Assembly: GCA_028826165.1 (NCBI GenBank)
Contig: JAPDFW010000011.1
Location: 248,001-312,000, forward strand
DNA length: 64,000 bases
Reading direction: 5' to 3'
Source of the DNA: Anaeramoeba ignava BMAN
Taxonomy: Eukaryota > Protista > Anaeramoebae
Shown here: positions 4,923-59,644 of the stretch, in pieces
Numbering within the stretch: the first letter of the stretch is position 1
Layout: each line of letters begins with the position of its first letter
Made by a program: the position numbers and the translations under genes
Notes under the pieces: model-generated
Database searches by the model: none
Told to the model about the DNA's origin: nothing
The model's input: the letters and a program-made list of their open reading frames with translations, nothing else

Positions 4923-5259
4923 TTAAAAAAAAAATGAAAAAAAATGAAAAATAAAAAAATGGAAAAAAAATTAAAAAATTTTTTAATTAAAAAATTAAAC
5001 TTAAAATAATAGATTTTTGAATAATAATTAATTTTAAAATGAATAATTTGAAATAAAAATGAAAAATTTTCTTGTTTTTTTTTTTTTGATCTTTATTTAA
5101 ATTTTTTTTTTTCAATTAATAAAAAGAAATTCATTTTTTTCTTTTGCTTTTACTTTTCATTTCTTTTAATTTTTTACTTTGTTTTTCTTGTTCTCTTTTT
5201 ATTTTGCTTTTTTGCTATATCAAAAATAAAGTGATCAAATAATTAAAAAACCAAAACAA

Positions 5260-19835: not shown

Positions 19836-20193
19836 TTTTTTATTTTTTCATTTTTCATTTTTCATTTTTTTTTGATTATGTAAGTTTTTTCGTAATTTAA
19901 AAAAAACTAAAATCCAATTTAATAATAAATAAACATAAAACAAGAAAATTCACATTAAACACAAACACAATAAAAATGGAATACTTATTAATTTAATATT
20001 ATTCCAAGAAAAAAAAATATTAAATTTTCTAACGAATTATAACGAAATAATTACAATTTAATTTTAATTTGAAAATGAAAATAAATTCTATTTGAATTAA
20101 TTTATTCTTGTTTAAATTATCTTTTTATTAATGGGAAAAAACAGAATTTTGTTTTGTTTTTCTTTTTATCCTTTTTTGAAAATAAGACAAAAT

Positions 20194-23100
20194 ATGGGAC
20201 AAATTCTTTCAGATCAAAATCCAAATCAATTTCAAAATCCAAATCAATTTCAAAATCCAAATCAATTTCAAGATCCAAATCAATTTCAAAATCCAAATCA
20301 ATTTCAAAATCCAAATCAATTTCAAGATCAATTTCAAGATCCAAATCAATTTCAAGATCCAAATCAATTTCAAAATCCAAATCAATTTCAAGATCAATTT
20401 CAAGATCCAAATCAATTTCAATTTCAAGATCAATTTCAAAATCCAAATCAATTTCAATTTCAAGATCAATTTCAAGATCCAAATCAATTTCAATTTCAAG
20501 ATCAATTTCAATTTCAAGATCAATTTCAAAATGAAAATTCAAATCAATTACAAAATGAAAATGAAGAAAAATCTCAAAAAATAGAAATATCAAAATTCTA
20601 TCAATTTCCTACTCAAGAACTTAATCAATTTTTAATTTCTGAACTTCTTTCAAATTATAAAACAATGTTTCAAAACGAAGAAAATTGTGATTTTACAATT
20701 TATGCTGGAAAAAACAATCAAAAAATTCCTTGTCATAAATCAATACTTAATTCAAGATCAAGATTTTTTTATGAAAATCATCACGAAAAATCAGAAACTG
20801 AAGAATTATATCTTCCACAATTTGGATATGATATTGTTAAACCAATTATTTCTTTTCTTTATGATTCAAAATTTCAATTTGAAGTAAACAAATTTGAAAA
20901 ATATTTCCAACTCGCAAAATATTTTAAATTAACAAGTTTAAGAATAAAAATTGAAAAAGATGTTTCAGAACAAATTAATAAAACCAATGCTATTTCAATT
21001 TATTTCAAAAGTATCTCTATTGAATCCAATTTTCTTTCGAATTTATGTGAAAAATTTATTCAAGACAATATTCATAAAATTATTGAAGAAAACCAAATTG
21101 AATCAATTAATAATAAAGAATTAAGAGAAATTATTCAAATGATTCAATTAACACCAAAAGAAAACAGAATTGAGTTGATTTGGAAATTATCTCAAGAGTG
21201 GAAGGAGAAATTCCAAAAAAGTAAAAAAAATTTAATCGATAAAGACAAATATATCGATCCAATTCAAATTCAAGAAATCACTGAGCAAATCCAAGATTTT
21301 CATATGATTATCGATAATATTAAAACGCATCGATACATTTCTTCTGATTCGAAAATTGGAAATAACCCCATTTTATCTTTAACTGATCAACTTCAGTTCT
21401 TGAATGAAAAAAATAAAGAATTACAACAAGAAAATGAAGAACTGAAAAGCAAACTCGAAAAACAAACCAATATCCTGAACAAAAATGATCAAGAAATCAC
21501 AAAAATGGAGGAATTGATTCAACAAAACGAAAACAACAAGCTAAATCTACCAAAACAGATCCTACAACCAAAAAAACAACCAATATTTTTCAAACTTGAA
21601 ACAAAAGAGAAATCCATTTCGGAGACTTTTTTCAATAATATTCTAAATCAAAATCAAAATCAAATACAAAATCAAATAAAAGATGATTGGGGAAATAATA
21701 ATCAACAATTAAAGAAACAAGATGATTGGGGAAATAATCAACAATTAAAGAAACAAGATGATTGGGGAAATAACCAATTAAAGAAACAAGATGATTGGGG
21801 AAATAATAATCAAATTCAAAATCAAAATCAAATACAAAATCAAATAAAAGATGATTGGGGAAATAACCAATTAAAGAAACAAGATGATTGGGGAAATAAT
21901 AATCAACAATTAAAGAAACAAGATGATTGGGGAAATAACCAATTAAAGAAACAAGATGATTGGGGAAATAATAATCAACCATTAAATCAAATACAAAATC
22001 AAATACAAAATCAAATACAAAATCAAATACAAAATCAAATACAAAATCAAATAAAAGATGATTGGGGAAATAATAATCAACAATTAAAGAAACAAAATGA
22101 TTGGGGAAATAATAATCAACAATTAAAGAAACAAAATGATTGGGGAAATAATAATCAACAATTAAAGAAACAAGATGATTGGGGAAATAACCAATTAAAA
22201 ATACAAGATGATTGGGGAAATAATAATCAACAATTCAAAAACAAATACAAAATGAAATAATCAACAATTAAAGAAACAAGATAATTGGGGAAATAATAAT
22301 CAACAATTAAAGAAACAAAATGATTGGGGAAATAATAATCAAATTCAAAATCAAAATAAAATACAAAATCAAATAAAAGATGATTGGGGAAATAACCAAT
22401 TAAAAATACAAGATGATTGGGGAAATAATAATCAACAATTAAAGAAACAAGATAATTGGGGAAATAATAACCAAATCAAATTCAAAATCAAATACAAAAT
22501 CAAATACAAAATCAAATACAAAATCAAATAAAAGATGATTGGGGAAATAATAATCAACAATTAAAGAAACAAGATGATTGGGAACCTTTGACAAAAGAGA
22601 AATATAGAGAATATCCAAAAGAATATAATTCATATCCAACAATAAAGACTAGTTACTACGGTCAAGAAATCAAGATTTCAGGAGCAAAAGAACAATTTCC
22701 AATAATTTCTCGTTTTGATAATAACTTACCTTTTTCTCCCCAAATTCAACAACTTTTACTTTCCAAAAATTGGGGATATCCATTAGCAATCCAAGCATTT
22801 TCATGGACACCAATTCTTCAAGGATTTGATTTTATTGGAGCTTCAGAAACTGGAAGTGGTAATTTTAAATTAATTTAAATTTTAATTTTAATTTTAATTT
22901 TAATTTTAATTTTAATTTCAATTTTAATTTTAATTTTAATTTTAATTTTAATTTTAATTTTAATTTTAATTTTAATTTTAATTTTAATTTTAATTTTAAT
23001 TTTAATTTTAATTTTAATTTTCAAAATTTGGATTATAAAATAGGAAAAACTCTTGCTTTTGCTCTTCCTGCAATCATGCATATTATTGCATATCAAAAAC

Positions 23101-24771
23101 AAAAATCCCAAAATCAACAACGATTTAGAAACAAAGGAGATGGACCGATTGTTCTTGTTGTATCACCAACAAGAGAATTATCGCGCCAAACATTCGATGT
23201 ATTTCAAGAATTTACACAAAAAACAAGTATAAAATGCATGAATGTTTGTGGAGGAAAAAATCGAAGAGAACAAGAATTTAGTTTGAAAAAAGGAGTCGAT
23301 GCTATAATTGCGACACCATCAAAATTAGTTGATTTCCTAAAAGCAGGAATTACCAATCTAAGACGAGCTTCTTTTATTGTTATTGATGAAGCTGATCTTC
23401 TTTTAGAAAATGGATTCCAACAAGAAATTCTTCATATTTTAGAAACAGTTCCTGTTCAAAGACAAATTGCAATGTTTGCTGAAGATTGGGTTCCCGAAAC
23501 ACAAGCAATTGCAGATCGATTTTTGAATCATCCAATTAAATGCATAATCGGAGATGCAGATCTTACTTTTGATTTGAATGTCAAACAAATTGTTGATATT
23601 GGTATTGAAAGTGAGAAATTTAACAGATTTGTTGCATTGATTAGTAGTATATATGGAAATGAAAAAATTTTGGTTTTTACAACTACGAAATTAAATGCAG
23701 ATGAATTAACGATATTATTAGGACAAAATGGGATTACAACTGTTTGTATTCATTCTGATAAAAATCAGGATGACAGAAAATTCGCTCTTGACATTTTTTC
23801 AGCCGGTATTTCACGATTAATGATTGCAACTGATGCTGCTTCTCCCATTTTGTAAATATTCTTCAAATTTCATTTTACATTTTCATTGACATTGTAATTA
23901 TATTGATAATTTATTTTTCATTTTAAAATATTTAGAGATACTTTAAATGTGAGCCATGTTATAAATTATGATTTTCCGGAAAATATTCGTGATTATATTC
24001 ATCGGCTAGCAAGAATTTACAAAGGTGGAAAACAAAGCAACTCTTTATTCTTTTTTTACAGAACCTCATTTTCCAAAAGCCAAAGCATTATTAGAAATCA
24101 TGAAAGAAACAACACAAGAAAAAATTCCTGATGAATTAATCCGATTAGCAGAACACAATTATCCGAATATATATGGAGATATTGATAATCATTCAAATAA
24201 TCCAAATTCAAATTGGAATCAAAATCAAAATCAAAATCAAAATCAAAATTCAAATTTAAATTGGAATCCAAATCCAAAATCAAAATTCAATTCAAATTGG
24301 AATTCAAATCCAAATACTAATTGGAATCAAAATAAAAATCAAAATCAAAATCAAAATTCAAATTGGAATAAAAATCAAAATCAAAATTCAAATTGGAATT
24401 CAAATCCAAATACTAATTGGAATCAAAATCAAAATCAAAATCAAAATCAAAATCAAAATCAAAATTCAAATTTAAATTGGAATCCAAATCCAAAATCAAA
24501 ATTCAATTCAAATTGGAATTCAAATCCAAATACTAATTGGAATCAGAATAAAAATCAAAATAAAAATCAAAATCAAAATTCAAATTGGAATTCAAGAGAT
24601 TTAAAAAAGGATAATGATAATAGCTTTAAAGGAAGAAGAAGTTTTAACCAAGATAAACATTATAATGATAATCACTCAGGATTTCGTGGAAAAAGAAATA
24701 TGAATAAGAATTCAAAAAGGAATTTTAATCAATCCCATTCACCTAAATCACCCCGAATTGATGATTGGTGA
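20194..24771 (+). CDS. BTB/POZ + coiled coil + (D/N)DWGNN repeats + DDX5/Dbp2-like DEAD-box helicase + N/Q/W-rich tail. Introns 22859-23043 and 23852-23935; indels at ~22240-22480 and ~24016
   Basis: [28 protein letters not shown] repeats are in frame with both the BTB ORF and [17 protein letters not shown] motif, SETGS|GKT, PTREL, DEAD, LVF, VINYDFP. Probable start MGQILS at 20194. Confidence 0.8.
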
Positions 24772-28748: not shown

Positions 28749-30543
28749 TTAAAAAATTAAACATTTCTTTTCTTTCTTTTTAATTTGATTTTGATTATTA
28801 AATTTGTTAATTAATAAATCAAACAAATTAGGATTTGTTTGATTTAATTGAAAATAATCAATTCCAATTTGAATTTCATCAATAATTTCTTGTGTAATTT
28901 GAATTCCTTCTTTAATTTGATTTGAATAAATCCAATATTCAAATATTTGAAATGATTCATCACTTAATTCACTATAATCTGTAACTTTATTAGATTTATC
29001 TTCTGTTACAGATAAAAACATTCCTCGATATAATTCACTTCTCATTATTAATATTAATTTTGGAAATTTATATTGTTTTTCTTTTCTTTCAATTATAAAA
29101 TCTTTTTCATTTTCATTTAAATAAATTCTTTTCATTGTTTCTTCTAATTTTTTCATTTGAATTTATAATTTCTTTAATTTCAGAATATAATTTTGGATTT
29201 ATTATTCTGTTGGAATAAATCATTTCAAATATTTGATTTGATTCTTGAATTGATTTTTTTGAAATAATTTCTTGAAGTTTTTCAATTTGATTTTGATTTT
29301 GATTTTGATTTAATCTATATTTTAATATTAATTTATGAGCTTCGATTATTTCTCCATTTTCGGTTTTGAATGAAATATCACAAAATTCTTTTCTTTCAAA
29401 TAATTTTATCAAATCTTCTTCAAGATTGAAAAAAGAAGGAGGAGAATAATAAAGAAATGAATGATGATATCCACAAGAAATATGATAATTGAAAATATTT
29501 TCATTAAATCTTAATTTAGGAAGTTCAATTTGAATTGGAATTAATTGATTATTTGTATCTCCAGTTCCTAATTGACCATGAGAATTATATCCAAATCCTA
29601 TTAATTTTGAATTAGAAGTTAAAATCAAAGTATGATCAAATCCAACAGAAAAATCAAGAATATTATCATCATTTTCAAATAAAGATGATTTGATTTCAGT
29701 AAATTCATAAGTATCTTCATTTTTGCCAAGTCCATTATTTTCATAATATCCACATGAATAAAGTTTTCTTTTTGGATTTTCATTTTCATCTTCAATCAAC
29801 ATTATTGAATGAGTATATCCACATTTAATATCAATTATTTTGCCTTTTGGAATATTTTGTATTTTGGTTAATTTCTGGATTTTTATTTCTTTTCTTATTG
29901 ATTCTCCTAATCCAACTTGACCAAATTGATTATCACCGAATCCAAATAATTCTTGATTTGAATTTAAAAGAAAAGCATGAGCTGAAGTATTTCCTGAAAA
30001 TATTTTAGAAACATTTTTCATCATTAAAATTAGTTTTTCTGTTTTTTGAAATGTTATAGTATCAACACCAAGTTGACCATAATCATTTGAACCAATTCCG
30101 TAAACATTTTGATTTGAAGTTAATAAGTAAATTGAACCATATCCAGAAACAATATCTTGAATTATTCTATCGTTTGTATCTTCAATTAATGATGAAATAT
30201 TGATAAATTCTTTTGGATTTTCTGAATTAATATTTTTTCCTTTAGCAAATACATTTCCTTCTTTTGTTAAAATAGCTTCATTTTCAAAACCAACAGTTAC
30301 TTTTTGAATATTTTCTTCAATTTGGATTTCTTTTTTTTCAGGTTTATGTTTTAAATATTCTATTGCTTTTCCATTTTCAAAAAGGAAAATTGTTGAATAG
30401 TTTCCTGTTGAAATTTGTTTAATTTGTTTTTCATTTTCATTTTCAAATTTAAATTTAAATTGAATTGGTTTTGTTATTGAATCTGGTTTATTTTTGATAA
30501 GTTTTGGAAATTGATTTCTTCCAAAAAATAAAATTTCATTCAT
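28749..30543 (-). CDS. RCC1 beta-propeller + tandem BTB protein, copy A (frameshift ~29150), ends KKKEKKCLIF
   Basis: RCC1 repeats GSNDYGQLG, GDNQFGQVGLG, GYNSHGQLGTG, VGFDHTLIL. BTB FCDISF..AHKLILKYR and KDFII..KLILIMRSELYRGMF. Confidence 0.9.
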
Positions 30544-30594
30544 TTTTGAAAAAGAAAAAAAATGAAAAAATGATTTTTGGATTTGAATTTTAAT

Positions 30595-32388
30595 TTAAAA
30601 AATTAAACATTTCTTTTCTTTCTTTTTAATTTGATTTTGATTATTAAATTTGTTAATTAATAAATCAAATAAATTTGGATTTGTTTGATTTAATTGAAAA
30701 TAATCAATTCCTCTTTGAATTTCATCAATTATTTCTTGTGTAATTTGAATTTCATTTTTAATTTGATTTGAGTAAATCCAATATTCTAATAATTGAAATG
30801 ATTTATTACTTAATTCACTATAATCTGTAACTTTATTAGAAGTATCTTCTGTTACAGATAAAAACATTCCTCGATATAATTCACTTCTCATTATTAATAT
30901 TAATTTAGGAAATTTATATTGTTTTTCTTTTCTTTCAATTATAAAATCTTTTTCATTTTCATTTAAATAAATTCTTTTCATTGTTTCTTCTATTTTTTCA
31001 TTTGAATTTATAATTTCTTTAATTTCATAATATAATATTGGATTTATTATTCTGTTGGAATAAATCATTTCAAATATTTGATTTGATTCTTTAATTGATT
31101 TTTTTGAAATAATTTCTTTAAGTTTTTCAATTTCAATTTGATTTTGATTTAATCTATATTTCAATATTAATTTATGAGCTTTGATCATTTCTCCATTTTT
31201 GGTTTTAAATGAAATATCACAAAATTCTTTTCTTCTAAATAATTTTATCAAATCTTCTTCAAGATTGAAAAAAGAAGGAGAATAATAATAAAGAAATGAA
31301 TGATGATATCCACAATAAATATGATAATTAGAAATATTTTCATTAAATCTTAATTTAGGAAGTTCAATTTTAATTGGAATTAATTGATTTTTTATATCTC
31401 CAGTTCCTAATTGACCATGAGAATTATATCCAAATCCTATTAATTTTGAATTAGAAGTTAAAATCAAAGTATGATCAAATCCAACAGAAAAATCAAGAAT
31501 ATCATCATCATTTTCAAATAAAGATGATTTGATTTCAGTAAATTCATAAGTATCTTCATTTTTACCAAGTCCATTATTTTCATAATATCCACATGAATAA
31601 AGTTTTCTTTTTGGATTTTGATTTTGATTTTCATTTTCAATCAACATTATTGAATGAGTATATCCACATTTAATATCAATTATTTTGCCTTTTGGAATAT
31701 TTTGTATTTTGGTTAATTTTTGGATTTTTATTTCTTTTCTTATTGATTCTCCTAATCCAACTTGACCAAATTGATTATCACCGAATCCAAATAATTCTTG
31801 ATTTGAATTTAAAAGAAAAACATAATTTGAAGAATTTCCTGAAAATATTTTAGAAACATTTTTCATCATTAAAATTGGTTTTTCTGTTTTTTGAAATGTT
31901 ATACTATCAACACCAAGTTGACCATAATAATTAGAACCAATTCCGTAAACATTTTGATTTGAAGTTAATAAGTAAATTGATTGAGCGCCAGAAACAATAT
32001 CTTCAATTATTCTATCGTTTGTATCTTCAATTAATGATGAAATATTGATAAATTCTTTTGGATTTTTTGAATTAATATTTTTTCCTTTAGCAAATACATT
32101 TCCTTCTTTTGTTAAAATAGCTTCATTTTCAAAACCAACAGTTACTTTTTGAATATTTTCTTCAATTTGGATTTCTTTTTTTTCAGGTTTTTGATTTAAA
32201 TATTCTATTGCTTTTCCATTTTCAAAAAGGAAAAAAACGGCAAAATTTGTAGATAAAATTTGTTTAATTTGTTTTTCATTTTCATTTTCAAATTTAAATT
32301 TAAATTGAATTGGTTTTGTTATTGAATCTGGTTTATTTTTGATAAGTTTTGGATATTGATTTGAACCAAAAAATAAAATTTCATTCAT
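30595..32388 (-). CDS. RCC1 + tandem BTB protein, copy B (intact, 597 aa), ends KKKEKKCLIF
   Basis: Single intact ORF with the same RCC1 and BTB motifs. Confidence 0.93.
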   Translation of the reverse strand: MNEILFFGSNQYPKLIKNKPDSITKPIQFKFKFENENEKQIKQILSTNFAVFFLFENGKAIEYLNQKPEKKEIQIEENIQKVTVGFENEAILTKEGNVFAKGKNINSKNPKEFINISSLIEDTNDRIIEDIVSGAQSIYLLTSNQNVYGIGSNYYGQLGVDSITFQKTEKPILMMKNVSKIFSGNSSNYVFLLNSNQELFGFGDNQFGQVGLGESIRKEIKIQKLTKIQNIPKGKIIDIKCGYTHSIMLIENENQNQNPKRKLYSCGYYENNGLGKNEDTYEFTEIKSSLFENDDDILDFSVGFDHTLILTSNSKLIGFGYNSHGQLGTGDIKNQLIPIKIELPKLRFNENISNYHIYCGYHHSFLYYYSPSFFNLEEDLIKLFRRKEFCDISFKTKNGEMIKAHKLILKYRLNQNQIEIEKLKEIISKKSIKESNQIFEMIYSNRIINPILYYEIKEIINSNEKIEETMKRIYLNENEKDFIIERKEKQYKFPKLILIMRSELYRGMFLSVTEDTSNKVTDYSELSNKSFQLLEYWIYSNQIKNEIQITQEIIDEIQRGIDYFQLNQTNPNLFDLLINKFNNQNQIKKKEKKCLIF

Positions 32389-32458
32389 TTTTGAAAAGAA
32401 AAAAATGAAAAAAATGAAAAAAATGATTTTAATTTGAATTTTAATTTAAATTTTAATT

Positions 32459-34263
32459 TTAATTTTTAATTTGATTTTGATTATTAAATTTGTTAATTAA
32501 TAAATCAAATAAATTTGGATTTGTTTGATTTAATTGAAAATAATCAATTCCACTTTGAATTTCATCAATTATTTCTTGTGTAATTTGAATTTCATTTTTA
32601 ATTTGATTTGAATAAATCCAATATTCAAATATTTGAAATGATTTATTACTTAATTCACTATAATCTGTAACTTTATTTGATTTATCTTTTGTTACAGATA
32701 AAAACATTCCTCGATATAATTCACTTCTCATTATTAATATTAATTTTGGAAATTTATATTGGTTTTTCTTTTCTTTCAATTATAAAATCTTTTTCATTTT
32801 CATTTTCATTTAAATAAATTCTTTTCATTGTTTCTTCAATTTTTTCATTTGAATTTATAATTTCTTTAATTTCAGAATATAATTTTGGATTTATTATTCT
32901 GTTTGAATAAATCATTTCAAATATTTGATTTGATTCTTTAATTGATTTATTTTGAAATAATTTCTTGAAGTTTTTCATTTTGATTTTGATTTTGATTTAA
33001 TCTATATTTCAATATTAATTTATGAGCTTCAATTATTTCTCCATTTTTGGTTTTAAATGAAATATCACAAAATTCTTTTCTTCTAAATATTTTTATCAAA
33101 TCTTCTTCAAGATTGGAAAAAGAAGGAGGAGAATAATAAAGAAATGATTTGTAATTTCCACAAGAAACATGATAATTGTAAATATCTTCATTAAATCTTA
33201 ATTCAGGAAGTTCGATTTGAATTGGAATTGATTGCCTTTTTGTATCTCCAGTTCCTAATTGGCCAAATAAATTTAAACCAAATCCTATCATTTGTTTTGT
33301 ATTTGAAGTTAAAATCAAAGTATGATAATATCCAATAGAAATTTCAAGAATATTATCATCATTTTCAAATAAAGATGATTTGATTTCAGTAAATTCATAA
33401 GTATTTTCATTTTTGCCAAGTCCATTAAATCGATGATTTCCACATGAATAAAGTTTTCTTTTTAGATTTTCATCTTCATTTTCATTTTCAATCAACATTA
33501 TTGAATAGTTATTTCCACATTGAATATCAATTATTTCACCTTTTGGAATATTTTGGATTTTGGTTAATTTTCTGATTTGTTTTTTCCGAAATCCTAATCC
33601 AAGAGAACCAAATCTGTTATTTCCACATACAAATAATTCTTGATTTGAATTTAAAAGAAAAACAAAATTTGAATAACTTCCTGAAAATATTTTAGAAACA
33701 TTTTTCATCATTAAAATTGGTTTTTCTGATTTTCTTGTTTTTCTGTTTAGATTTTTGTGTTTTTTAATAATTATTTTAGAACTAAGACTAAGTTGACCAT
33801 ATTTATTTGAACCAATTCCATAAGCATTTTGATTTGAAGTTAATAAGTAAATAGATTGATATCCGTAAGCAATATCTTGAATTATTCTATCATTTGTATC
33901 TTCAATTAATGATGAAATATTAATAAATTCTTTTGAATTTTTTGGATTAATATCTATTCCTTTGGCAAATACATTTCCTTCTTTTGTTAAAATAGCTTCA
34001 TTTCCAGAACCAACAGATACTTTTTGAATATTTTCTTCAATTTGGATTTTTTCAGGATTTTGTTGGTTTGGATTTCTTAAATATTCTATTGCTTTTCCAT
34101 TTTTAAAAAGGAAAATTGTTGAATAAATTCCTGATAAAATTTGTTTAATTTGTTTTTCATTTTCATTTTCAAATTTAAATTGAATTGGTTTTGTTATTTT
34201 TTCTGATTTATTTAGCAAAAGCCTTGGATTTTCATTTGAACCAAAAAATAAAATTTCATTCAT
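32459..34263 (-). CDS. RCC1 + tandem BTB protein, copy C (frameshifts ~32950 and ~32760), no CaaX
   Basis: Three overlapping ORFs collinear with copy B. Confidence 0.88.
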
Positions 34264-34314
34264 TTTTGAAATGAAAAAATGAAAAAAATGAAAAAATGAA
34301 TTTTAATTTGAATT

Positions 34315-37300
34315 TTAATTATTTTTTTTTTCATCTGAATCTAATATTATTTTTGATTCCAAATCATTTCTTGAATTAATCAAATTATTAATTTTTAAAA
34401 AATATTCAATTCCTTCATAATATCCATCTTTTTTAACTTCTTTGATTAGCTTTACACAATGAGGAGACGAGAAAACAAGAAGCATAAACTGTGCAAAATG
34501 AGAGAACACGACTCCTGGTTGTGATTCTTTGAGTTTCAAAAAGAGGAAATGAAAATGAATAAACATTTTGCTTTTTATAAAAAAATCAACAAATAATTCA
34601 ACATCTTTTTTAAGGCTTTTTTGTGGATCACGAAGATTGCTTCTTGGAAGTTTCATCTCTGGGTTTTCTGCCAATTTGCGCGAAAGACAATCATCCATAG
34701 AAAGCAATTTTGTGATGCATTTGATACTGTAAGGCAAATAGGCAGGATATTTTGTTTTGGATCCCTTTTTTGGCTTGAATGATATTCCCATCAATAAAAA
34801 CGGCTTGATTTTGTTTTTTGAAATGAGATACGAACAGAAAATATCGTTGTAATATATCATCTGATAGAAAAGTTTCCAGGAATGCTTTGCAAAAATCAAG
34901 CTCTCTTCATTCGAGCAAAACTCTTTGATTTTCTTTAAGAATTCTTCATTCTTGTAAATCAACTTCATGATCGTTTTTTCTCGAATAAGAAACCTGATCA
35001 CATCCAGAATGTCGGCTTTGAATTCGTACTCGTTTGAAGGCGAGTTTTCGATTATCAAAAGAAGACGTCCAATGTCTTCTGAAGTGATATTTATTGTTGA
35101 TAAATGGTTGTTTTTGGGATTTTTGCTTTTTATTTCTGGTTCGTTTTCAATTTTTTGCTTTTTTTGCAACTTTTGTGGCCCAATTTGCATCATTGAAAAG
35201 GAACTGTGTGATTTTTGCAATGGAGAAATTTGGCTCATTACTGATGTTTGGGGTTGTGAGTAAGAGAAATCATTGTTTGATTGATAGTGCGTATTTGAAG
35301 CCTGCAAATTTTGATTGTTTGATAAAAATCTCACGAAAGAAAGCAATAATTTCGCGAGGTTTTTCATTCCAGGAGAATAAAAATGCTGAGTTCCTATGTG
35401 TATTCTCATCAAGAGCTCTATAAGAAATGTTTCTCTTGTGATTGCAATGTGTTTAAAAGTCGAATTTACTTCGTTGGTGATTAAAAAACGGTAAATATGG
35501 CAGCACAAATCCACAACTAAACTTGAGATATGGGGTGGCAATTCAAATTTCACATCCTTTTTGAATATTAATTTGCTGACTTCCTGATTGTTTTTTTCTT
35601 GTCGTTTTTTTCTGTTGGATGTAAACTTCACATGCTCCAAACGCTTTGTTCTGTGTTTCCTCACAAACGAATATTTTTCACAACTAATCGCAGTATTCAA
35701 AGATTCGGTTCTTTTTGGACTAGCCATTGATTTCTGAACAAATTCCATTTTGGAGTGTGAAAATAAATCCTCAAATAAAACATGTGTTGCTGTTGCATAA
35801 TTCTCAGCAAAAAACACAAAAAATCTTGGATTTCTCATTGCAATCCATAGTTTATTTGAAGCTTCTTGCACGTGATGAAGCTTTGATGATCCCAATCTCC
35901 GAAGTTTGAAAATCAGTCCCACTTCGGGACTTTTTAATATCCTGAATAATTCATCACTTTCAATCTTCAAAATGTGCAATAACACAAACAAAAAATGTGT
36001 TGAAATGAACACTGATGATGAGCCAATTCCTCTGAAAACATATTTTTGAATAATTTCAGGTGATTCTGTAATCATGTTAATTATATCCACAAACAATTTC
36101 TTTATTTGATAAAGTACAAATTTTGCAATTGGTTGGAATGAATAAATACTTCTAAATAAAACATTTTCTGTATTTAATGAATCATAAATGAGCTGCAAGT
36201 AATAATGTGCTTGAATAACTTTCAAGAATTCATTTAATTGCTGATTTTCTCCAAATTTCTTGATTTTTAATTTTTAATTTTTTTAATTATTATTCAATAA
36301 ATAAATTTATTTATTTATTATTTTCTTCTTTTTACAATTTTTAATCTAAATTGAAGATCAGGAATATAAGGAAAAATATCTACAGGAATAGGTTTAAAAA
36401 AATTCATTGCATACGAAATTCTATATAAATATTTTAACTCTAAATTTTGCGTAAATTGTTCGAGTAGTGTTTTTCCTGTTATTTTTTGAAATAAATCAAT
36501 CACAAAACTGGATATTTTTGCATGAACAGAAACTGATTTGCAAGTTTCAAAAATATCCAATATTTCATGGAAATTTGTTTGTGTGATTGTTTGTTGTAGA
36601 ATATCTGATAAAGTAATTTTTCCTTTTTTTGTTGGCGTTTTCATTCTCCAATTTTTTATCATTTCAAAAAATTTATCCAAACACTAAAAAAAAATTTGTT
36701 TGTTTGTTTTAAATATTCATTTTTAGATCAATTTTTAAATTTAAATATTCACTTGTTCTGTTTGAATGAATTTTTTCAAATTTGATATATTCAAATCAAT
36801 CAATTTACGAACAATTTTCGAAGCTTTTTTTTCTGTACTTTTTTGAGTCTATATTTTGTTTTTCAATTCAATTAAATTAAATTAAATTCATTTCAATTAA
36901 ATTAAATTAATTTTTTTTTACATTTTCAGAAACATTTTTTGAATAAAATTTCTTGAATCGATTTCCATGTTCAAATTTTAGTATTTCGTTTTTTACTTCT
37001 TCAAGATATAATTTATCTTTTTTGATTTTATCAAGATTGAAAAATTCAGGAAAATTTTCTTGATTATTTAAATTACAATCTTGTATTTGATTGAAAGAAT
37101 TTTCCAATTCAATCAATTCCTAAAAATCAAAAATCAAATTTTAAAATTTAAATTAAAATTAAAATTAAAATTAAAATTTTCAAACCATTTCTTGCGATTT
37201 TATCCTTATTTGTTTTTCTATAATATTTTTTTGTTTAACTAAAACTTTTGAAAAAAATTCTTTGATTGAATCCTAAATTTAAATTAAAAATTCAATAAAA

Positions 37301-47209: not shown

Positions 47210-47293
47210 CGACGTGAACAGGATTCGAACCTGTACTCCCATCAAGAGAAACTGATTAGCAGTCAGTCGCCTTCACCTTTCGGCCACCACGTC
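47210..47293 (-). tRNA. tRNA-Ser (GCT)
   Basis: Reverse complement GACGTGG TGGCCGAAAGGTGAAGGC G ACTGA CT-GCT-AA TCAGT (long variable arm) ACAGG TTCGAAT CCTGT TCACGTC G. Downstream T9 Pol III terminator. Confidence 0.97.
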
Positions 47294-47446: not shown

Positions 47447-50400
47447 ATGAATGTTCAAAATTTTCAAGATTTAATCCAAAATGCGAAATCTATTCAAGAA
47501 AAAATCCAAATTATGGAACAACTTTTAAATCATATTTTTACATTATCAAATGAAGAAATTATAGAATTTATCTTTCCAGTTTTAAAAAATCAAGTACAAA
47601 CAACTTGGGAAATGGAAAATCAACAAGAAAAACAAGAATACCAATCAATAATATTAAAAGTGATTTCGCATCTTCCATTAATTCTCCACAAGAGAATTGA
47701 CAGAAAAACCGCACACAATATAATAGTTCTTTGCGGTACATTTTTAACAAAGGGAATCAAAGAGGAAACAGGGATATTAAGTATAAGAACGTTCAAAGAA
47801 ATTCTCAAAAAGTTCCCAAACATATACAGAGATTTTATCCCTCAAACCCTTAAATTAACACAAGGAATATTCATCTCAACAATTGAAAGATGCAAACAAA
47901 ACGAAAACTGGAAATATCTTCGAATGGAGGATAATATCCATCTTTCCAAAACTGCAAATGTGTTGATTGAATGGCTAGGATTAATAGAGGCCATTCTCAA
48001 AAAATATCCCCCGCAAAGTTTGGGTCAGAATATGCAACCCTTAGTGGATTACTGCACCCAAATCATTTGTTTGTTTAGTGATACCACTTTAAATTTCCAT
48101 TTTTTGTTGGTTATTAATAATATCTTGAGGAATTTTCCAAATATCACAATTGATTTCGCAAAGGTTATAAATTGCGCAACATCAGTTTTTATCCACGCAA
48201 ATCCAGAGCGTGTTAACGACAAGAAGAAAATACTCAACCTGATTTTGAGGTTGTTGGGAAACAAGCAAATTTTGGCAGAAAGCGAGGAAAATGCAACTCT
48301 TATTTTGGATTGTTTGCTTAACTACAACTTGTTTTCCCATGTCTTGCTCATAAAAAACTCAGCAAAATTAATTCTGTTCCAATTTTACAACACAATCTAC
48401 ATGCTATTCCGCGTCAATAGAAACAACAGCATCATTTCTAACTCGCATATTCGCAACTTTTTGAGGATTTATTTCCAATTTGTTTATGATCCAAACACAC
48501 CAATTTATTTGGATATTCTTTTCCAGTTTATTGTTCGCAAAATGATCCCCAAGTTGATCAAATCCTCTCTTCCCATCGAAGAGCTAATGCAAATCTTGCC
48601 TAGAATTCTCCAATCGTATGTGGACAAAATCCACTCTTTGTCAGAAATGGAGCAGAAATACCTGATTGGTGATGTGCAGGTGAAAAAATGCATCAATGAT
48701 TGGATGTCAATCAAAACTCGCTTGTCTTTCTCGTTCTTTGAATACTATCCCTCGCGTATTCAACTCAACGACTATTTCATCCACAATTTCTTGCTCAACA
48801 AGAAATCATGGGAACTCGACCAATCGCAGGAAATCACGCAGATTGAACGCAAGAAAGTTTCCCGCAAAATGATTGAATCTCTTCTTGATTATTTCACTTC
48901 AAATTTTCTTCTTGTTGTTGAGTCAATTTTGCATTTGAGAGAGAAATCAAACTCACAAATAGCAAATCCGCAATTAAACGAGCACATCTCGCTTTTGGTG
49001 GATGCTAACCAACAGAACACTCTGAGATTAAGCAAGGATCGTCTCTCCATTTTTGGATACTCTTTGCTCAGAAACTTTTTCCAGCAGATAATCTCAATCT
49101 ATGTCGATATGATTGTTGCTCACAAAACCACATCCAATAAAGAAAATCTTCAGCAGGAATTTTTCCAACATCAGAAAAAAAGATACCGCCATATCTGCCA
49201 CATCTTCCAGAGATTCCCTGCTGATCTTTTCGAAAAGATGTGTGTTGATTCCATTTCCTTTCTTTATAACGGATTGCAAAATGAAAAGGAGTTTCTGAGA
49301 ATGATCCGCATCATTGTCAAGCAAAGCTTCCCAAATATCAGATTTCTCGCCAATTTGCTTGATTTCTTGATCAAAAAAACCCCAGATTTTCTGAATCTTT
49401 CTCAAAACACACGAAATGCAATTTCCGATTTGTTTATTTTCTTGTTTTCCTTTTTGGATAAGAAAAAGCCAATCCAAAACCAAACAGAATCTCAAACACA
49501 AGAAATCACAGTCGAAATCCAAGACCTCAATTTATACAAGTACTCGCCAATAAAAGCATTACTTGATAATACCAACAGCATTAATACTAACAATTTAGAT
49601 AGCAAGGATAAAGTTGATCCAAACACAAATTTGATTGGAAACCATATTTCTCAAATATTCGCATTTGGTTTGCACAAAATTAACAGCAAATTCATCTCCA
49701 ACTTCCAAAAATCACCAGACTCATCTCTTCCTTTCCTCAGATTTCTGTCTCATTTATACCAAAATCTCCAGGAATCAGGCTCAGAAAAACAAATTGTTGT
49801 TTATTTAATTGACAAGTTCCAAGAGATTTCAAATTACTCTCCAATCAATCCCATTTTCGCAAAAATCACAAAATCAATCGCCAAGTTATGTTTCCATAAA
49901 TTTGCTTTCCATATCACATTTTTAGCCAAAAACTTCCAATCTTTTATCCACCAATCCAAAATGCTTTTGTACTCAAAAAAACCCGCACACAACACCATTT
50001 ATCTCAACTGGCTCAAGTTTTTGATCACCAATTTTAATTTAACTTATTTGGAACAAAAATTCAAACCAACTCAACTTGCTGTAATCCAAAAATTGATCCA
50101 AATATCATCCCAAGATCACTTTGACGAAAATTCGCAAAAAGCTTTTGAGATTCTTGGCAGATTTGCCTCTTTTTCTCGCAATCCCTTTGCTAAAAAGTTG
50201 CCTTTTTTTCAACCAAAAAGAAATACCAAGTCAGAATCCAAAATTATTCTTGATTTGTTTTTCCATGATGAACACACACAAATATTCCATTTGGACCTAA
50301 CTCACTTTATCAACGAAATGCTAGATAACATCAGCGGAACACACCAAACAACACACAAAAACGAGAACACAAGCTTTATTAATTTGCTTCAGACAATTCT

Positions 50401-53400
50401 CTTCAATTTGGTTTTAAGCATGAAATATTCACTTGAATCAAGTGATACTTTAAACAATTTAAATTCTTCCTTTCTATCAAATATTCATCCCCAAAAAAAT
50501 GAGGAAAAACCACCCAATTCATCCAAATCTTCGCGAATTTGGTGCGATTATTCGCTGTTAATTAAACTTTTCCACACACAATTTCTTTTGCAAAAAAATC
50601 AGGAATCTAAGTTATCAAATCAAATTTCCAAATTCTTGAGTCTCTTTCTTCAATTTAAAACAAACGGCGGTTCATTTGTAGACGATCTTCGCTCCACATC
50701 AAGAAATATTGACTACTATTCCATGTTCCAAATAAGGCATCTATTTTCTTCATCTCATGGAATGAAGCTTATCAAATCTCTTGTTGAATTTTTTCCAGTA
50801 TCTCATTCTTTCTTTAGTTTGCCTTTTATCCAGAAATTATTCTCAAACAAAATTGAGAACATTCAACCAAATTCTCAAGCTCAAAATAATATTCTTATTC
50901 AAACATTATCTATTCTTTCTGGATCACCTAAAACAAAGGACTTCTTTTCCAAGTATTGTCTGCAAATATTCAGATCTCTCGTTTTAATACTTGAACATCA
51001 ATTAGTGCCAATTTCTCAAAGAAACAATATGATTGAGTTGATGCAAACAATCATTTCAAATTTTTTTCCATCAAAAAAACTGATAATAATTCAAATTTAA
51101 CCTCAGTCAAAAATTTATCTGAAAAAATCCTCTGTTTATTATCAACTAAATTCTGGTCACAAAACAAATCTTTAAGAAAAGTTTGCAAAGTTTTAATTTC
51201 CAAAATATTTGAGAGTGTAAATTTCCCAATTGATGATGTATTAGAGAAATATTATTTGTCAAATATTCCACAAATTTCAAGTGAAATACAAACTGAAAAT
51301 GAAATACAAATTGAAAATGAATCAAAAATTGCAAATGAAAAAATAATTGAAAATGAATCAAAAATTGAAAATGAAAAAATAATTACAAATGAAAAAATAA
51401 TAGCGATTTGCGATGGTCTTTCATTCTTTCTCTTTTTAATCCAAGAAAATCCAATCACAAATCCTCAAAAACTAAATTTCAATCATCTTCCAATTTCTTC
51501 CTATATTATAAAAAATATTTACTCAGAAATAAACACAACCACAAATAAAAAACCCCAAGAAGTAAATGACACTCAAAAAATGGATATCAGCGAGAAATCT
51601 TCAAATAAAAACCAAGAATCAAAACAAACATCCAAAAATGAGAAACAAGAACCTGAAAAGGATCCCCAAAAAATACCAAGAAAATTATTAATTAAAAAAT
51701 CCCTAATCTTTCTTGTGAGAACAAGTTTCTATCTCGCAAATGATTATGAATTCGCCAAAAAACTCATCTTCATCATAATTAAGGGGATGTTCAAAGGCGA
51801 ATTTTTTGAACAATTCCAGAAAGCTTTCCAACTTTTCAACACATTATGTGAAAAATTTCAAGAAACAAAAGAAACAAGACTCAAATTGGTGATTAGCATT
51901 TTAAATCAAGAACAAATACAAGATTACTCAATTCATCATTTCAAAACATTGCGATTCATTGCTCAGTTGTCTCCTGTATTATTATCAGATTCTTTGATTT
52001 TCCGTGTATTTGACCAAGTTCTGCAAAATTTAGAACCCAAAAACATGGAAATAATTCTTGTTCTTTTGGATATTTTCGATCAAATGCAGAATACAGATAT
52101 TTATTTAAAAACAATATTAAGCAATAAAACTGTTTTAGAAAGTGTGCCTTTGATTGAAAATGATGATTTTTGGATTAAACTGGGCAAATGCTTAAATAAA
52201 TATCATCAGGAAACAATCGATTTCTTCTTATCAAATTTAAGTGATGAAAAGATGAATGAAAGATTGATTCTGTTGATCAACCAACAAGAAAATCATCGCA
52301 TACGCGAGTCTTTGCTTTCTTTTGATGGGAAATTCTCAATTCTTTTCCAGCAATACATGAGCCAATTTTCCCAATTTGTAGAGCAAATACCAAATCAATC
52401 TGCATCCGTTTCTGCAAAAGACCGAATTATTGCAAATCAAATTCTCGGAATATACCAAGTTTTGCTCAAATTCAAAAACTTTCTCGATGATACCCAAGAT
52501 GGAAATAATCACCCTTTAAATGATCCAATGGCAGAATCTTTGATAGGTTTAGTCTCAAAAATCATTTCTAAATTTTGGAGCGAAAATTATTCATTGAGTA
52601 GTGATTTTGATGAGATTGATGAGATTCAATTTTCAGTAAATCAAGAAAAAAAACAAAATACTTCTCAAAGAAAGGAAATGAAAAACATCCTCGTTTCCAA
52701 TTTCTTGGATATCCAGAAAATTGTTGATTGTCTTTGCAGATATTTGCTTGGCTATTTTTATCAAATCAAAAAATCAAACGAGGAAAAAATCCTTCAAAAT
52801 TTAGAAAATTTAGAAATGATCAATTCAAATACCATTTTATATGGAAACATATTTGTTGATCAAACCGCAAAAAGTAACCAAGAAATGGTTTTGCAAAACA
52901 AATTTGCGCTTCTTTTGATTTTGATATCTCTTTTTGGAAGTATTCCTTTCAAGTTTGATCAACTCAATCTCTTCCAATTTTTGATTGAGAAAATTATGGA
53001 GTTTGAAAGTTACCCAAAAATTGTTCAAGCCATTTTTGCCCATATCACAAAAAGACTCAAAGCAATTACGCATTCCATAGGGATTCACTTTATTTCCCAA
53101 ATCAATATTCTATTCCAGAGAATATTATTCCCAATATTCCAAAATCTCGTCATTTCACAAGAATTTTTCACAGATTTTTCTGATGAAGTCGCAAGAATAC
53201 TAAAGATTAACCAATTTTTTGATCCGGAAGTCAACAAGAAATTATTCGAAAAAAATTTCCTTCATTTAATAATATTTGAGGAATTCAAAATGAATCTTTT
53301 GCAAAGTTTGATTTCCATTGAAATATTTCCACAAACCTTAGGAATAGAAGATGTAAATCTTTTGCAGAAATCAAACCAATTAATACCTCACAAAACTCAG

Positions 53401-56400
53401 CACTTTTCTTCAATAGAAAACAAACTACTATTTCTTAAAACAAAAATTTTAATGAAAGGAGGAATACTTGGTTCAAATGAAGACCAAATTCTTCAAATAA
53501 TTTCTGAATTTATTGCGAAATCTGATTTTGAGGATGAAGAAGAGGATTTAGTGCAGAAAATGGTCACTGATTTATTGAATTTGGGGAATGAGCAATCACT
53601 AACAAATCAAAAACAAGAAGACCTGCAAAACGAACAAATCCATGAAATAGGAATGGATATCGAAATCCCACTTTTGGATGAAAAACCAAAATCAACATTT
53701 CATTCCAAAGTTATTGAGTTGATCCAAAATCAAATCGCTCAAGCAAGTCTCAGTTCATCAGTCACTTTCAAATTTCTTGTTAGTATAATTGTCAAAAACA
53801 CAAGCTTTTTTTATGATTTAAATGAAAAGGCTATTGTGCTAATGATTCACCATTTCCAGTGTGGAATGAGTGATTTAAATTTGGGGATTGATATTCTATC
53901 ATTTGTTGTCGATTGGTTTGGAGATTTGAAGAAGAAATCCGAACCAACATTTTCACAACTGCAAAAACTTCGATTGCAAGAAGAGATTTTCTCTATTCTC
54001 ATTGCATTCAGCCATTTGCTTTCTGTCTCTTCAGGCGTTTTTTCACGAATAAAGAATATTTTCAAGAGATGCTGCTTAATTTTCGACAATCTCAACATTT
54101 CCTTTTCAGGGAATCTAACTCAACCAACAAGGATTTTATCGTTGATTAAAGTCCCCATCAAATATAATAATTGGAGCTTTAAATTTGTTCATGAGCAAAA
54201 CTTGGATAAATTGATTCAAACAATTCTGCTCAATTCTGATTTGGTTGATAAAGAGATCATCCAAAATGTAATTTTTATATTCACAAGCTTTATCCAAAAC
54301 AAGGAAAGTTTTGATGGAGATGCCTTGCAATTTATCGATGATCTCACAAATGAAATCAACAATGTTCTTGCAAAACTAGACTTGATGAAATTCAAGTTTG
54401 CAATAATTGCTGAGTATTTCCTGTTTTTGTACCAACAAATACCCCATTTATTCGCCAAACACGCATTGAAATTCTATCATTTCCTAAAACAAGCTCAAGT
54501 CATTCATGATTTCGAATCACACCACGAAATTGAGATGAAAAACCAGTCTAATTTTCATCAAGCACAAAATATCATCATTTCAGAAACCATTAATAATCAA
54601 CAACCACAAAATTCAATGCAAAACTACCCTAACCAAATAATCGAGAATAATCAGTTGATGAACCAAAACAGTGTCTTGGCAACAAATTCCATTCTTTTAC
54701 AAAATCTCGAGATAATTATTCACACTATCCTACTTCTCAAACCAGAACCATCCAAATTATTTGAAATAATGATAGATCTTGTTGAAAGCGCCAAATCACC
54801 CGCATTTTTATCAGTTCTTCTTGACCAATGCTTTGCAATACTCGATTCAAACACAGATCCTATTCTTTTCCTCAAGGAAATAACCCACAAAAACGATCCC
54901 AAAAGCAACACGTCACAAATGAAAATTGAAACGAAAAAAGAAAAAGTGGACGAAGATCCTTCAAATGAGTTAATACCCAAATTGGCGTATGAAATCCCCA
55001 AGGATTTATCAGAAAAATTTGTTCATTCTCTCATGAAGAGATTTAATCTTGTGATGGAAAAATGCTTTGATTTAGTAAAAGAAAAGTTTTTTGGAATTTT
55101 GATTGGATTGTGGAGAAAAGATCACAGTTTGGTTGAAGTTTTAATCAAATACCCTCATGTTTTGCTAAAAGGAGTTGGAGCATGCTCGCAAATACCCCAA
55201 ATAAAAAAGGGTGTTTCTGAAATCTTGGGATGGGCAACAAAGAGTAAATCTCTTGAAATGAAAATTGAAACATCAATACTACTGTTTCTTAATGTCTCGC
55301 AGTTTGATTTCTTCTGTTTCCATGATTTCTTTGCAAATATTGTTAGAATTGTAATCGAAACTTTTATTGAACAATCTGAGAAAAACCAAAATAGCAAAAA
55401 TATCGCGAGTATTCACTCCATTTTGAATCAGATTTACAATCTTATACAGAAAGAGTCAACAATTTTATGTTCAATTTTGCCTGATTTTCTGGATCAAGTT
55501 TTGGATAAAGTGATAAACACACACGAAAAAAGAAAAAACTTCATCCAAATATGCTTGGAAATTATGCTCAAATCTTCTGTCGTTGAAAACCACGGCAAAC
55601 AAAGGGAGGAAACCAAGATCCAAGAAGAAAGAATACTTTCTGAGTTTTTTGGAGCAATTTCAAGAATTCCTGAAGTGGTTGATATTCCTGCGCAAATATC
55701 ATCATTCATTTCACAGAAATATCGAATCGAGAATCAAATTGCGTTTTTAATTGAAAAAAATATTGAAATGAAATCAAAAATTGAAAATCATCATCTCATC
55801 TCAGAAATCAAAATCCCATTTGGAATCGAAGATGCAAAAAAAGAAGGAAGAATTGGCAATTTTCGGGAGTTGTTAAGATATTACAAAAAAATTGGTGAAA
55901 ATGAATTCATTTTTGGATTATGCGATGGAGTTATTCAAGAAAGCGAGAAAAGAAAGGCAAATTATTATCAGATGATTGAGAAATTTGACAAATCGGAAAA
56001 AATTGTAATGAGATGTCTCAGAAAATTATCAAGCACAACAAATCAAAACCTTGCTAAGAAAAACGAGAATGTGGAAACAAATTATGGTTTGGATGAAGAG
56101 CAAAGATTTCTGGAAGATGAAATTTGTCGGGATTTATGGGTGGATGCATCAAAAAACATACTGAATTATGAATCTTTATTAGAATTTGCAAAAGAAACTT
56201 TTAACTTTGATTTGGTTCTTGAAAGTTTATATCGTTTAGGCAATTTTGAAGCAATCCAAGAAGTGATCAAGTTCCATAATTTTGTACCGAACAATTTCCA
56301 GAACCATTTGATTGAATTTGTGTCTGGATTGATGATTTATGCAAATGGAAATGTTGGTAAATATTTTGATATGGAGAATAAAGATGGGAAAGAACAATAT

Positions 56401-59400: not shown

Positions 59401-59644
59401 TTTGTTTCTCAATGAAATGGTTTTCTTTAATTTTTCAGAAAGCGAAATGGGAATTGAGGATATTTTCCGATTCAAAAAGAATAATGTTCATTCTGTTTTT
59501 GATAGAATTGAGGATTTAAGTAATTTTAAAAAGAGCACTAATACAAATTCCAATTCCAATACTTCTTGTGATGAATTAATTAAGATCTCAACAAATATTA
59601 AGATAATTTCTGAATTAAGTCCATCATTTTTTGCTTGGTTTTAA
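47447..59644 (+). CDS. TRA1: TRRAP/Tra1-like PIKK pseudokinase (~4000 aa); breaks at ~51080-51255 and ~57440 are probably errors
   Basis: HEAT region including AFEILGRF, FAT region, WIPWIQQI..PQTLYYSLR, IPGQ, RRFFFRGDDGFEYPYLLQ, FRKQFISQL, VPFRLTPNM, FATC end LSPSFFAWF*. No DRH/DFG catalytic motifs. Confidence 0.88.

Follow-up and report, generated by a model that had tools for sequence, protein, structure and literature searches.

A 64,000-nucleotide window of the Anaeramoeba ignava BMAN genome (42.8 Mb; contig JAPDFW010000011.1, positions 248,001 to 312,000) contains a plus-strand gene in which a BTB/POZ domain is followed by an array of tryptophan-glycine (WG) repeats, a DEAD-box RNA helicase core of the DDX5/DDX17/Dbp2 type and a tail of regularly spaced tryptophans. 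There is about an even chance that this is a real, lineage-specific chimeric gene of A. ignava, whose reading-frame breaks are most likely assembly errors and whose product would serve as a ribonucleoprotein (RNP) scaffold. Here, the first exon of a BTB–ARM family, which runs from a low-complexity head through the BTB domain and its helical extension to a coiled coil, would have replaced the first exon of a tryptophan-rich helicase paralogue. The BTB frame would continue into the WG array and the helicase because exon 1 was joined in frame, and with the breaks corrected a single protein of ~1,435 residues is predicted. The architecture, a BTB domain plus an aromatic-repeat disordered region plus a DEAD-box core, appears to be new, although its parts are known: word-index and representative searches (length up to 1,804 residues in the widest, and with incomplete coverage of A. 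ignava) retrieved no other protein that combines BTB and DEAD domains, in line with an initial claim that no such architecture had been described. The fusion is probably young, as judged from a synonymous divergence (dS) of ~0.25-0.3.

A BTB exon in front of a helicase body

The BTB domain, the WG array, the helicase and the tryptophan-containing NxNW tail all lie on the same strand within one block of coding-level base composition, without an intergenic gap. The genes of the window have a GC content of 19-36% versus 3-6% for its intergenic DNA; between 20050 and 24800 the values are 0.19-0.36, the flanks are at 0.03-0.06, and the sole dip inside the block is a microsatellite intron. The BTB module (BTB, conserved helical extension and coiled coil) extends from 20563 to 21655 on the plus strand, as delimited by Pfam and by DNA alignment with paralogues. 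Its BTB/POZ domain, at ~20659-20970, matches PF00651 with E=1.7e-15 and 57.6 bits against a cut-off of 20.5, over profile positions 2-108 of 110, and the domain named in the preliminary description of this DNA, which was made by eye from the letters, is thereby borne out.

The module matches more than 110 loci of the genome, and ~16 of these are close copies (56-74% identity in the search, 75-80% over the core). The best matches of the BTB part are to A. ignava proteins. Two annotated members of the family, P0001 and P0002 ('protein aardvark'), have a BTB–coiled-coil–ARM organisation; the window module is 66% identical to P0001 by alignment and 67% by BLASTP. In every paralogue read, exon 1 ends with ..FINQISNLNESK directly before GTAAAT, and beyond a short intron the ARM part opens with DSI(E/K)E... 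By DNA alignment, the homology of the window gene to these paralogues stops at ~21655, the position of their exon-1 donor, and is followed by the array spacer and the first DDWG. No ARM remnant was found downstream of ~21655 in the window gene, and the WG-helicase body occupies the place of the parent family's ARM substrate-binding domain. Across the A. ignava genome, BTB is a promiscuous module that occurs joined to many other domains.

The first open reading frame (ORF) runs on the plus strand from an upstream in-frame ATG at 20131 to a TAA at 22258-22260, with a likelier start at 20194 (MGQILSDQ..); at the position equivalent to 20194 the BTB paralogues begin MS(D/N)SSKEIDS... The N-myristoylation consensus is MGxxxS. 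The likely start MGQILSD (20194-20211) matches this consensus, and the MS(D/N)SSKE of the paralogues has no Gly2.

The helicase half and its paralogues

The DEAD (PF00270, E=1.4e-28) and Helicase_C (PF00271, E=4e-11) profiles both match above their curated cut-offs, and the other Pfam matches in the gene are the BTB and a weaker, overlapping ResIII only. The best solved relatives are DDX17 (6uv0, 2.9e-53) and Dbp2 (8ark, 2.2e-46), with DDX3X at 4e-32 and Vasa (2db3) at 4e-28, and in a tree the gene falls into a DDX5-like clade. The preliminary description was right in calling the helicase Dbp2/DDX5-type and in reporting a W-punctuated tail that ends ..PRIDDW, whereas the functional analogy that it drew to Vasa is weak (4e-28 versus 2.9e-53 for DDX17).

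The N-terminal exon part of the helicase (22591-22858, plus strand) contains the Q-motif region (GYPLAIQ) and, as SETGSG, the first part of motif I, within a block that is conserved in the two nearest paralogues. Intron 1 (22859-23043; GT..AG, phase 1, GC 0.05) is made up of nearly nothing other than (TAATTT)27 and splits motif I between GSG and KT, at a position that matches the intron of the helicase paralogues. The core exon (23044-23851) carries the remainder of motif I (GKT), motifs Ia (PTRELS), Ib (TPSKL) and II (DEAD), the sequence AED at motif III, and TDAAS at the beginning of motif V. Intron 2 (23852-23935; GTAAAT..TTTAG, 84 nucleotides) lies within motif V, and the open frames of the paralogues break at the equivalent point, directly after the ..RGL of this motif. 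The last exon (23936-24771; Tandem Repeats Finder (TRF) period 108) supplies the rest of motif V and motif VI, after which come eleven NxNWN repeats (24199-24595), a short stretch of basic character (SFKGRR/SGFRGKR) and, at the end, ..PRIDDW, with TGA closing the frame at 24771. In an alignment to DDX17 (6uv0) the gene retains motifs Q (PLAIQ), I (GSGKT, interrupted by intron 1), Ia, Ib-like (TPSKL) and II (DEAD), and motifs III (AED for SAT), V (SPILD for ARGLD) and VI (HRLARIYK for HRIGRTGR) are degenerate; the window copy does not hold the full DEAD-box catalytic motif set.

Helicase exon 2 has two near paralogues in the genome, designated C46 (70% identity) and C50 (59%), with all other DEAD-box genes at or below ~43%. 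C46 (G000:C46:575789-580514; L017 4789-9514) has its own first exon (MSEKEK..) and a (TAAAAT)n intron, and it ends KDDDGW; its array consists of four DDNNWDDQ followed by ~20 QQKQDNW(G/E)NDN units, its tail is a long series of RGRRNFNRDNDNDSGF repeats, and its motifs are intact (TAT, ASRGLD and HRIGRTAR). C50 (L018 6564-8888) is identical to NCBI P0005, 'ATP-dependent RNA helicase ddx5-related [A. ignava]'. It begins MEQFLS.. and contains three DDNSWDDQ and a few DNWRKDN units, most of the array tryptophans being replaced (YNSRNDNQ units) within an intact frame, and its motifs read GNGKN (I), DETD (II), SST (III) and HRIGRVAQ (VI). Hexanucleotide microsatellites make up nearly the whole of introns in two of these genes, (TAATTT)27 in the window gene and (TAAAAT)n in C46 (L017 ~4959-5190).

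Both paralogues are without a BTB domain. The trio have in common an N-terminal tryptophan array, a Q-motif block, matching intron positions and a terminal acidic tryptophan; in C46 and C50 the block reads TIETTYQxQxIKISG..FPIISxF, and the tails are of RG type, with RGRRNFNRDNDNDSGF repeats and a ..DDDGW end. The content of the array differs widely among the three. In a maximum-likelihood tree the window copy, C46 and C50 form a species-specific 100/100 clade on a long stem, whose sister group (95/91) consists of two ordinary DDX5-like genes of A. ignava. Within the clade, the branch of C46 is very short; the two copies with decayed motifs, that of the window and C50, pair as sisters on long branches. 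Since C46 and C50 both carry the array without a BTB domain, the tryptophan array and the terminal acidic tryptophan are, on this comparison of sequences, helicase-family traits that are older than the BTB fusion.

The WG array and other aromatic repeats

The array occupies 21680-22590 on the plus strand (TRF period 39, 22.6 copies) and is set in a matrix rich in N, Q and K. Between 21688 and 22580 it holds exactly 19 (D/N)(D/N)WGNN motifs and one final DDWE, so that the earlier count of about 19 stands; the spacing from tryptophan to tryptophan is 11-13 residues, with outliers of 20 and 34, instead of the ~12-14 first given. The residues include 25% Q, 12% K, 6.5% I and 5.8% L, and the immediate context of the tryptophan is DDWGNN. 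The DNA word GATTGGGGAAATAAT is present in 12 copies in the array and in only two others in the 42.8-Mb genome, both of them incidental WD40 matches, and WG arrays are found in the genome at the window locus and in C46 only. A look-alike search of the array in the ESM Atlas gave sub-threshold bacterial hypothetical proteins only and retrieved no homologue through the array.

Three disordered regions of the window gene have aromatic residues at strictly regular intervals, namely phenylalanine at the N-terminus, the WG motifs of the array and the NxNW repeats of the tail. The N-terminal low-complexity head (20194-20532, plus strand) is built of ~18 copies of an 18-nucleotide repeat that encodes (D/N)PNQFQ with a periodic Phe (TRF period 18, 18.4 copies).

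Reading-frame breaks

The assembled sequence does not present this gene as one uninterrupted frame. The WG repeats had been said to be in frame with the BTB domain, and this is true of the first 13; the next five are in the +1 frame (22262-22475), and the last motif and the start of the helicase are again in the first frame from 22480. The array does run into the helicase at the DNA level, as had been stated, but reading the locus as one ORF needs three frame corrections, and the single ORF expected across 22240-22590 is not there, being interrupted by the TAA at 22258-22260 and by two one-base shifts with no bridging intron. The first of these shifts lies somewhere in ~22237-22262, and the second, at ~22462-22482, compensates for it by returning to the first frame. 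The two are 220-240 nucleotides apart and cancel exactly, and the 71 codons between them still encode perfect WG units. The third break consists of one extra base in 24029-24036, within motif VI, where DNA alignment places an A7 run in C46 and C50. In the frame of the helicase there is no ATG in 22262-22858, that is, none before motif I, and the helicase part is therefore unable to start alone.

Introns have been rejected as bridges of the array breaks, as 22200-22600 is entirely free of GT. The GT..AG pairs around the motif VI break have a coding-like GC content (0.28-0.40), and those inspected, for example a 13-nucleotide pair at 24025-24037, would delete conserved residues. Programmed frameshifting has been set aside, there being no slippery-site logic and the same type of break being met in unrelated genes.

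The chance that all three breaks are assembly artefacts is judged to be somewhat better than even. The BMAN assembly was made with ABruijn v1.0 from MinION R9.4/9.5 reads, corrected with Racon (three rounds) and Nanopolish, and given no more than two rounds of Pilon polishing (PMC11550330). Given the early date of this Nanopore assembly and the like breaks in other genes of it, the breaks are probably errors. The breaks in the window gene and in the genes named below are all insertions or deletions, with no nonsense substitution among them. The motif-intact C46 has two breaks inside repeats, a missing T at ~5520 and two extra nucleotides at ~9238 (L017 numbering), and three of nine BTB paralogues break frame only within their coiled-coil repeats. 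In these three (L022 on C72, L024 on C24 and L036 on C86) the sole defects are frame changes in the QQKDQEINQFKQSI coiled-coil repeats, with wrong-frame NKKIKKLINLNNL visible, a pattern that on inspection of the sequence is the same as in the WG array. An internal control for the rate of assembly indels may be provided by a PIKK gene of the window (FAT plus PI3K-like kinase; 47447-59641, plus strand), which changes frame at 57395-57489 in unique coding DNA of normal GC content; only coding-like GT..AG pairs are available to bridge this break, which is probably a one-base assembly error. Repeat-rich genes of the BMAN assembly would thus carry frame errors by which annotation is misled.

Selection on the two halves

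The BTB half differs from its nearest paralogue by 12.4% at the nucleotide level, with dS at 0.25-0.30 and a ratio of nonsynonymous to synonymous divergence (dN/dS) of 0.35-0.45. Helicase exon 2 differs from its nearest paralogue by 18.5%, with dS ~0.28 and dN/dS ~0.7. Neither the BTB exon nor helicase exon 2 contains a stop codon. In simulations of neutral substitution under the local base composition, the expectation is 4-8 stops for the BTB exon, with P(no stop) at or below 0.01, and 5-8.5 for helicase exon 2, with P(no stop) at or below 0.005; the bound for the BTB exon holds even when only half of the divergence is placed on the window lineage. Both halves are held open by selection, which for the BTB domain and coiled coil is purifying. 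A long-dead pseudogene is ruled out by these simulations, and therefore very recent inactivation or sequence errors remain.

A proposed multivalent scaffold

In the chimeric gene favoured here, the BTB domain and coiled coil would dimerise or oligomerise the protein, and the BTB domain might also dock it on a cullin-3 ligase. A role as cullin-3 adaptor is a natural guess because the WG-helicase body replaces the ARM domain. The helicase core, with its RNA-contact and Walker motifs kept, would probably act as an RNA clamp or scaffold with a slow or dead ATPase and not in unwinding. The periodic phenylalanines, the 19 WG motifs and the 11 NxNW repeats, together with the terminal acidic tryptophan, would offer many weak docking or 'sticker' sites, through which the W/F repeats may contact a folded partner or one another, as in condensate-forming DEAD-box proteins. 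Overall, the predicted product would be a multivalent RNP scaffold or adaptor, for which PIWI proteins are one candidate partner of the tryptophan motifs.

Several observations weigh against this interpretation. The dN/dS of helicase exon 2 and the loss of three catalytic motifs also fit a gene that is heading to decay, and the density of breaks, three in 4.6 kb, is high. The BTB domain of a CUL3 adaptor has a φ-x-E contact motif and a 3-box/BACK helix pair; by eye, the cullin-contact position of the window BTB reads H-H-E and not hydrophobic-x-E, and the AlphaFold2 model of the BTB module is poor (predicted local distance difference test score 53). The sequencing runs that match the stretch are of DNA or unknown type only, with no RNA run on record, and no orthologue with the same architecture was found outside A. 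ignava in the searched libraries, whose coverage of A. flamelloides is uncertain.

If expressed, the fusion would be a combination of modules not described before and a clear natural instance, in a BTB family that is expanding fast, of domain capture at the level of an exon. The trio of helicases, one intact and two degenerate, may offer a compact system for the role of periodic tryptophans beside a DEAD-box core, the candidate roles being partner docking, PIWI binding and condensate formation.

Comparison with known systems

The closest relatives of the core are DDX5/DDX17/Dbp2 (p68/p72), and the trio branches from A. ignava DDX5-like genes; disordered tails are present in both. In contrast to these proteins, the window gene has degenerate motifs III, V and VI, tryptophan arrays in place of RGG-type extensions, an acidic-Trp end and a BTB domain. 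Vasa/DDX4 and DDX3/Ded1 are alike in their acidic-Trp C-terminus (..IDDW here, ..DDDGW in the paralogues and ..ADDWD in P0006) and in their disordered aromatic or RG flanks, yet the window core is clearly nearer to DDX5/17.

A combination of GW motifs with a DDX5-type core is also met in three red yeasts (Pucciniomycotina), in proteins of Rhodotorula araucariae (P0142), Sporobolomyces blumeae (P0126) and Rhodosporidiobolus odoratus (P0124), all annotated as 'hypothetical protein'. Their cores are flanked on either side by disordered regions with 13-18 GW/WG motifs (SGWG, GGWG). Unlike the window gene, they are G/S/A-rich and not N/Q-rich, have intact motifs and are without a BTB domain. They form a separate clade, and their GW regions were therefore gained independently, which suggests that the combination of GW motifs and a DDX5-like helicase is recurrent.

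The Ago-hook proteins (GW182/TNRC6, NRPE1, SPT5L, SDE3 and Tetrahymena Wag1/CnjB) likewise have repeated WG motifs in a hydrophilic, N/D/G-rich and presumably disordered region. The likeness of the window array to these is one of motif and partial composition only, and its spacers are rich in Q, K, L and I. The domain set of GW182/TNRC6 (UBA/Q-rich/PAM2/RRM) is not found in the window gene by Pfam. An Ago hook and a helicase are joined in one protein in SDE3 (PMC2910046, PMC12477606), whose helicase is a UPF1-like member of superfamily 1 (SF1), whereas that of the window gene is of the DEAD-box type.

ARMC5, SPOP and KLHL proteins are BTB cullin-3 adaptors with a second interaction domain. The window gene resembles such adaptors, by way of its own paralogues P0001/P0002, in the order of its parts, a BTB domain being followed by a helical extension and then, at the C-terminal end, by a partner-binding region. 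It differs from the paralogues in that the ARM part is replaced by the WG array and the helicase and in the H-H-E at the φ-x-E position, and its cullin binding is putative.

Argonaute and cullin genes

The preliminary description had made its Argonaute proposal depend on an Argonaute or Piwi in the genome, and three loci with a Piwi domain (PF02171) are present, on C55 at ~344 kb, C141 at ~54 kb and C109 at ~79 kb (L011-L016). One Piwi tail ORF matches solved structures of animal PIWI at ~1e-68 and of AGO2 at 1e-36. All three loci end with the PIWI-type ..CQYA(H/S)KL..LY(Y/F)L, two tail ORFs having been read, and no AGO-clade gene was seen with PF02171 in the genome. A. ignava thus appears, from these matches, to hold only PIWI-clade Argonautes. 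There are ~eight cullin loci in the genome.

According to a 2025 survey (PMC12477606), the three Trp-binding pockets are conserved among AGO-clade proteins, and those of PIWI-clade proteins are highly variable. AGO-binding WG/GW domains favour W, G, N, S, A and D and disfavour L, I, M, Y and C (PMC2910046). Trp-dependent binding of a PIWI protein by the array is rated as rather unlikely on this evidence.

Alternative explanations

The gene could instead be a recently inactivated chimera, in which at least one break is genuine, the product is at most a BTB–coiled-coil protein of 688 or 709 residues that carries 13 WG repeats and ends at 22260, and the helicase is a young untranslated relic. This is an unlikely account, though well worth weighing, for it takes the assembly as it stands, with its stop at 22258-22260 and its breaks. 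The helicase half lacks its own start, its motifs III, V and VI are degenerate and its dN/dS is ~0.7, and the BTB family undergoes birth and death, as seen in the truly dead, stop-rich copies on C17 and at C60:1523637. It has to contend, however, with ~670 helicase and tail codons at 75-80% A+T in which there is not one nonsense codon, when 5-8 are expected under neutrality in exon 2 alone. Nor does it sit well with the perfect WG units between the array breaks and a second break that restores the frame exactly, with damage that is confined to indels, one of them (in motif VI) within an A-run, or with like breaks in the motif-intact C46 and in the conserved PIKK gene. An artificial joining of a BTB exon and a WG-helicase gene during assembly, across low-complexity DNA that encodes N and Q, is extremely improbable. 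The assembler was an early one (ABruijn v1.0) with limited polishing, and the join adjoins low complexity of the AATCAA type that is common genome-wide; yet the join is in frame, falls exactly at the exon-1 boundary of the paralogues and is interior to a long contig (C2, ~269.6 kb). Furthermore, the assembly has no second source locus, the BTB copies being at most 80% and the helicase copies at most 70% identical, and 56% of the sampled words of the stretch recur in a run of unknown type (X4) that comes from another sample and another study.

An Argonaute/PIWI hook coupled to BTB–cullin-3, as the preliminary description proposed, by which small-RNA complexes would be brought to ubiquitination, in analogy to ZSWIM8-CUL3, or to granule assembly, accepts the chimeric gene and differs in the function given to it. 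Such a coupler is improbable. In its favour are the 19 tryptophans in a D/N/G-rich context at 11-13 residues, with residues of the kind favoured in AGO-binding domains (PMC2910046), the three Piwi and ~eight cullin loci, and the report that ciliate GW proteins bind PIWI-clade proteins (cited in PMC12477606). The position of the WG-helicase part at the place of the parental ARM substrate-binding domain, the precedent of SDE3, in which a hook is joined to a helicase, and the independent rise of GW-rich DDX5-like helicases in red yeasts point the same way. On the other side, the Piwi genes read are of the PIWI clade, where the three Trp pockets are reported to be highly variable, and the spacers contain much L, I, K and Q, of which the first two count with the residues least to be expected in domains that bind AGO. 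The tryptophan arrays, moreover, are older than the fusion and vary greatly, C50 being without most of the tryptophans. The full coupler would range from improbable to very improbable. Its most explicit form, a full-length PIWI-directed cullin-3 adaptor in which a PIWI–small-RNA complex docks on RNA held by an ATPase-dead clamp while the BTB dimer brings CUL3, is very improbable. If it were true, a counterpart of the ZSWIM8 type of Argonaute turnover would have evolved independently in a deep-branching protist with PIWI-clade Argonautes only, and the BTB-less C46 and C50 would be non-degradative PIWI cofactors.

Neighbouring genes

Other BTB-like sequences occur near the genes discussed above. 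On the minus strand of the window, 28752-34302 contains three tandem paralogues with an RCC1-like propeller, in two of which Pfam recognizes a C-terminal BTB; an ORF just downstream of the third RCC1-like gene (32462-32779) is BTB-like by eye, and Pfam gives no match for the ORF at 34318-36273. Beside both C46 and C50 lie ankyrin-repeat genes whose C-terminal halves have two BTB-like stretches (KVHKLIL.. motifs, by eye). A tRNA-Ser(GCT) gene is located on the minus strand at 47210-47293 of the window, in a short gap between two long protein genes of the plus strand.

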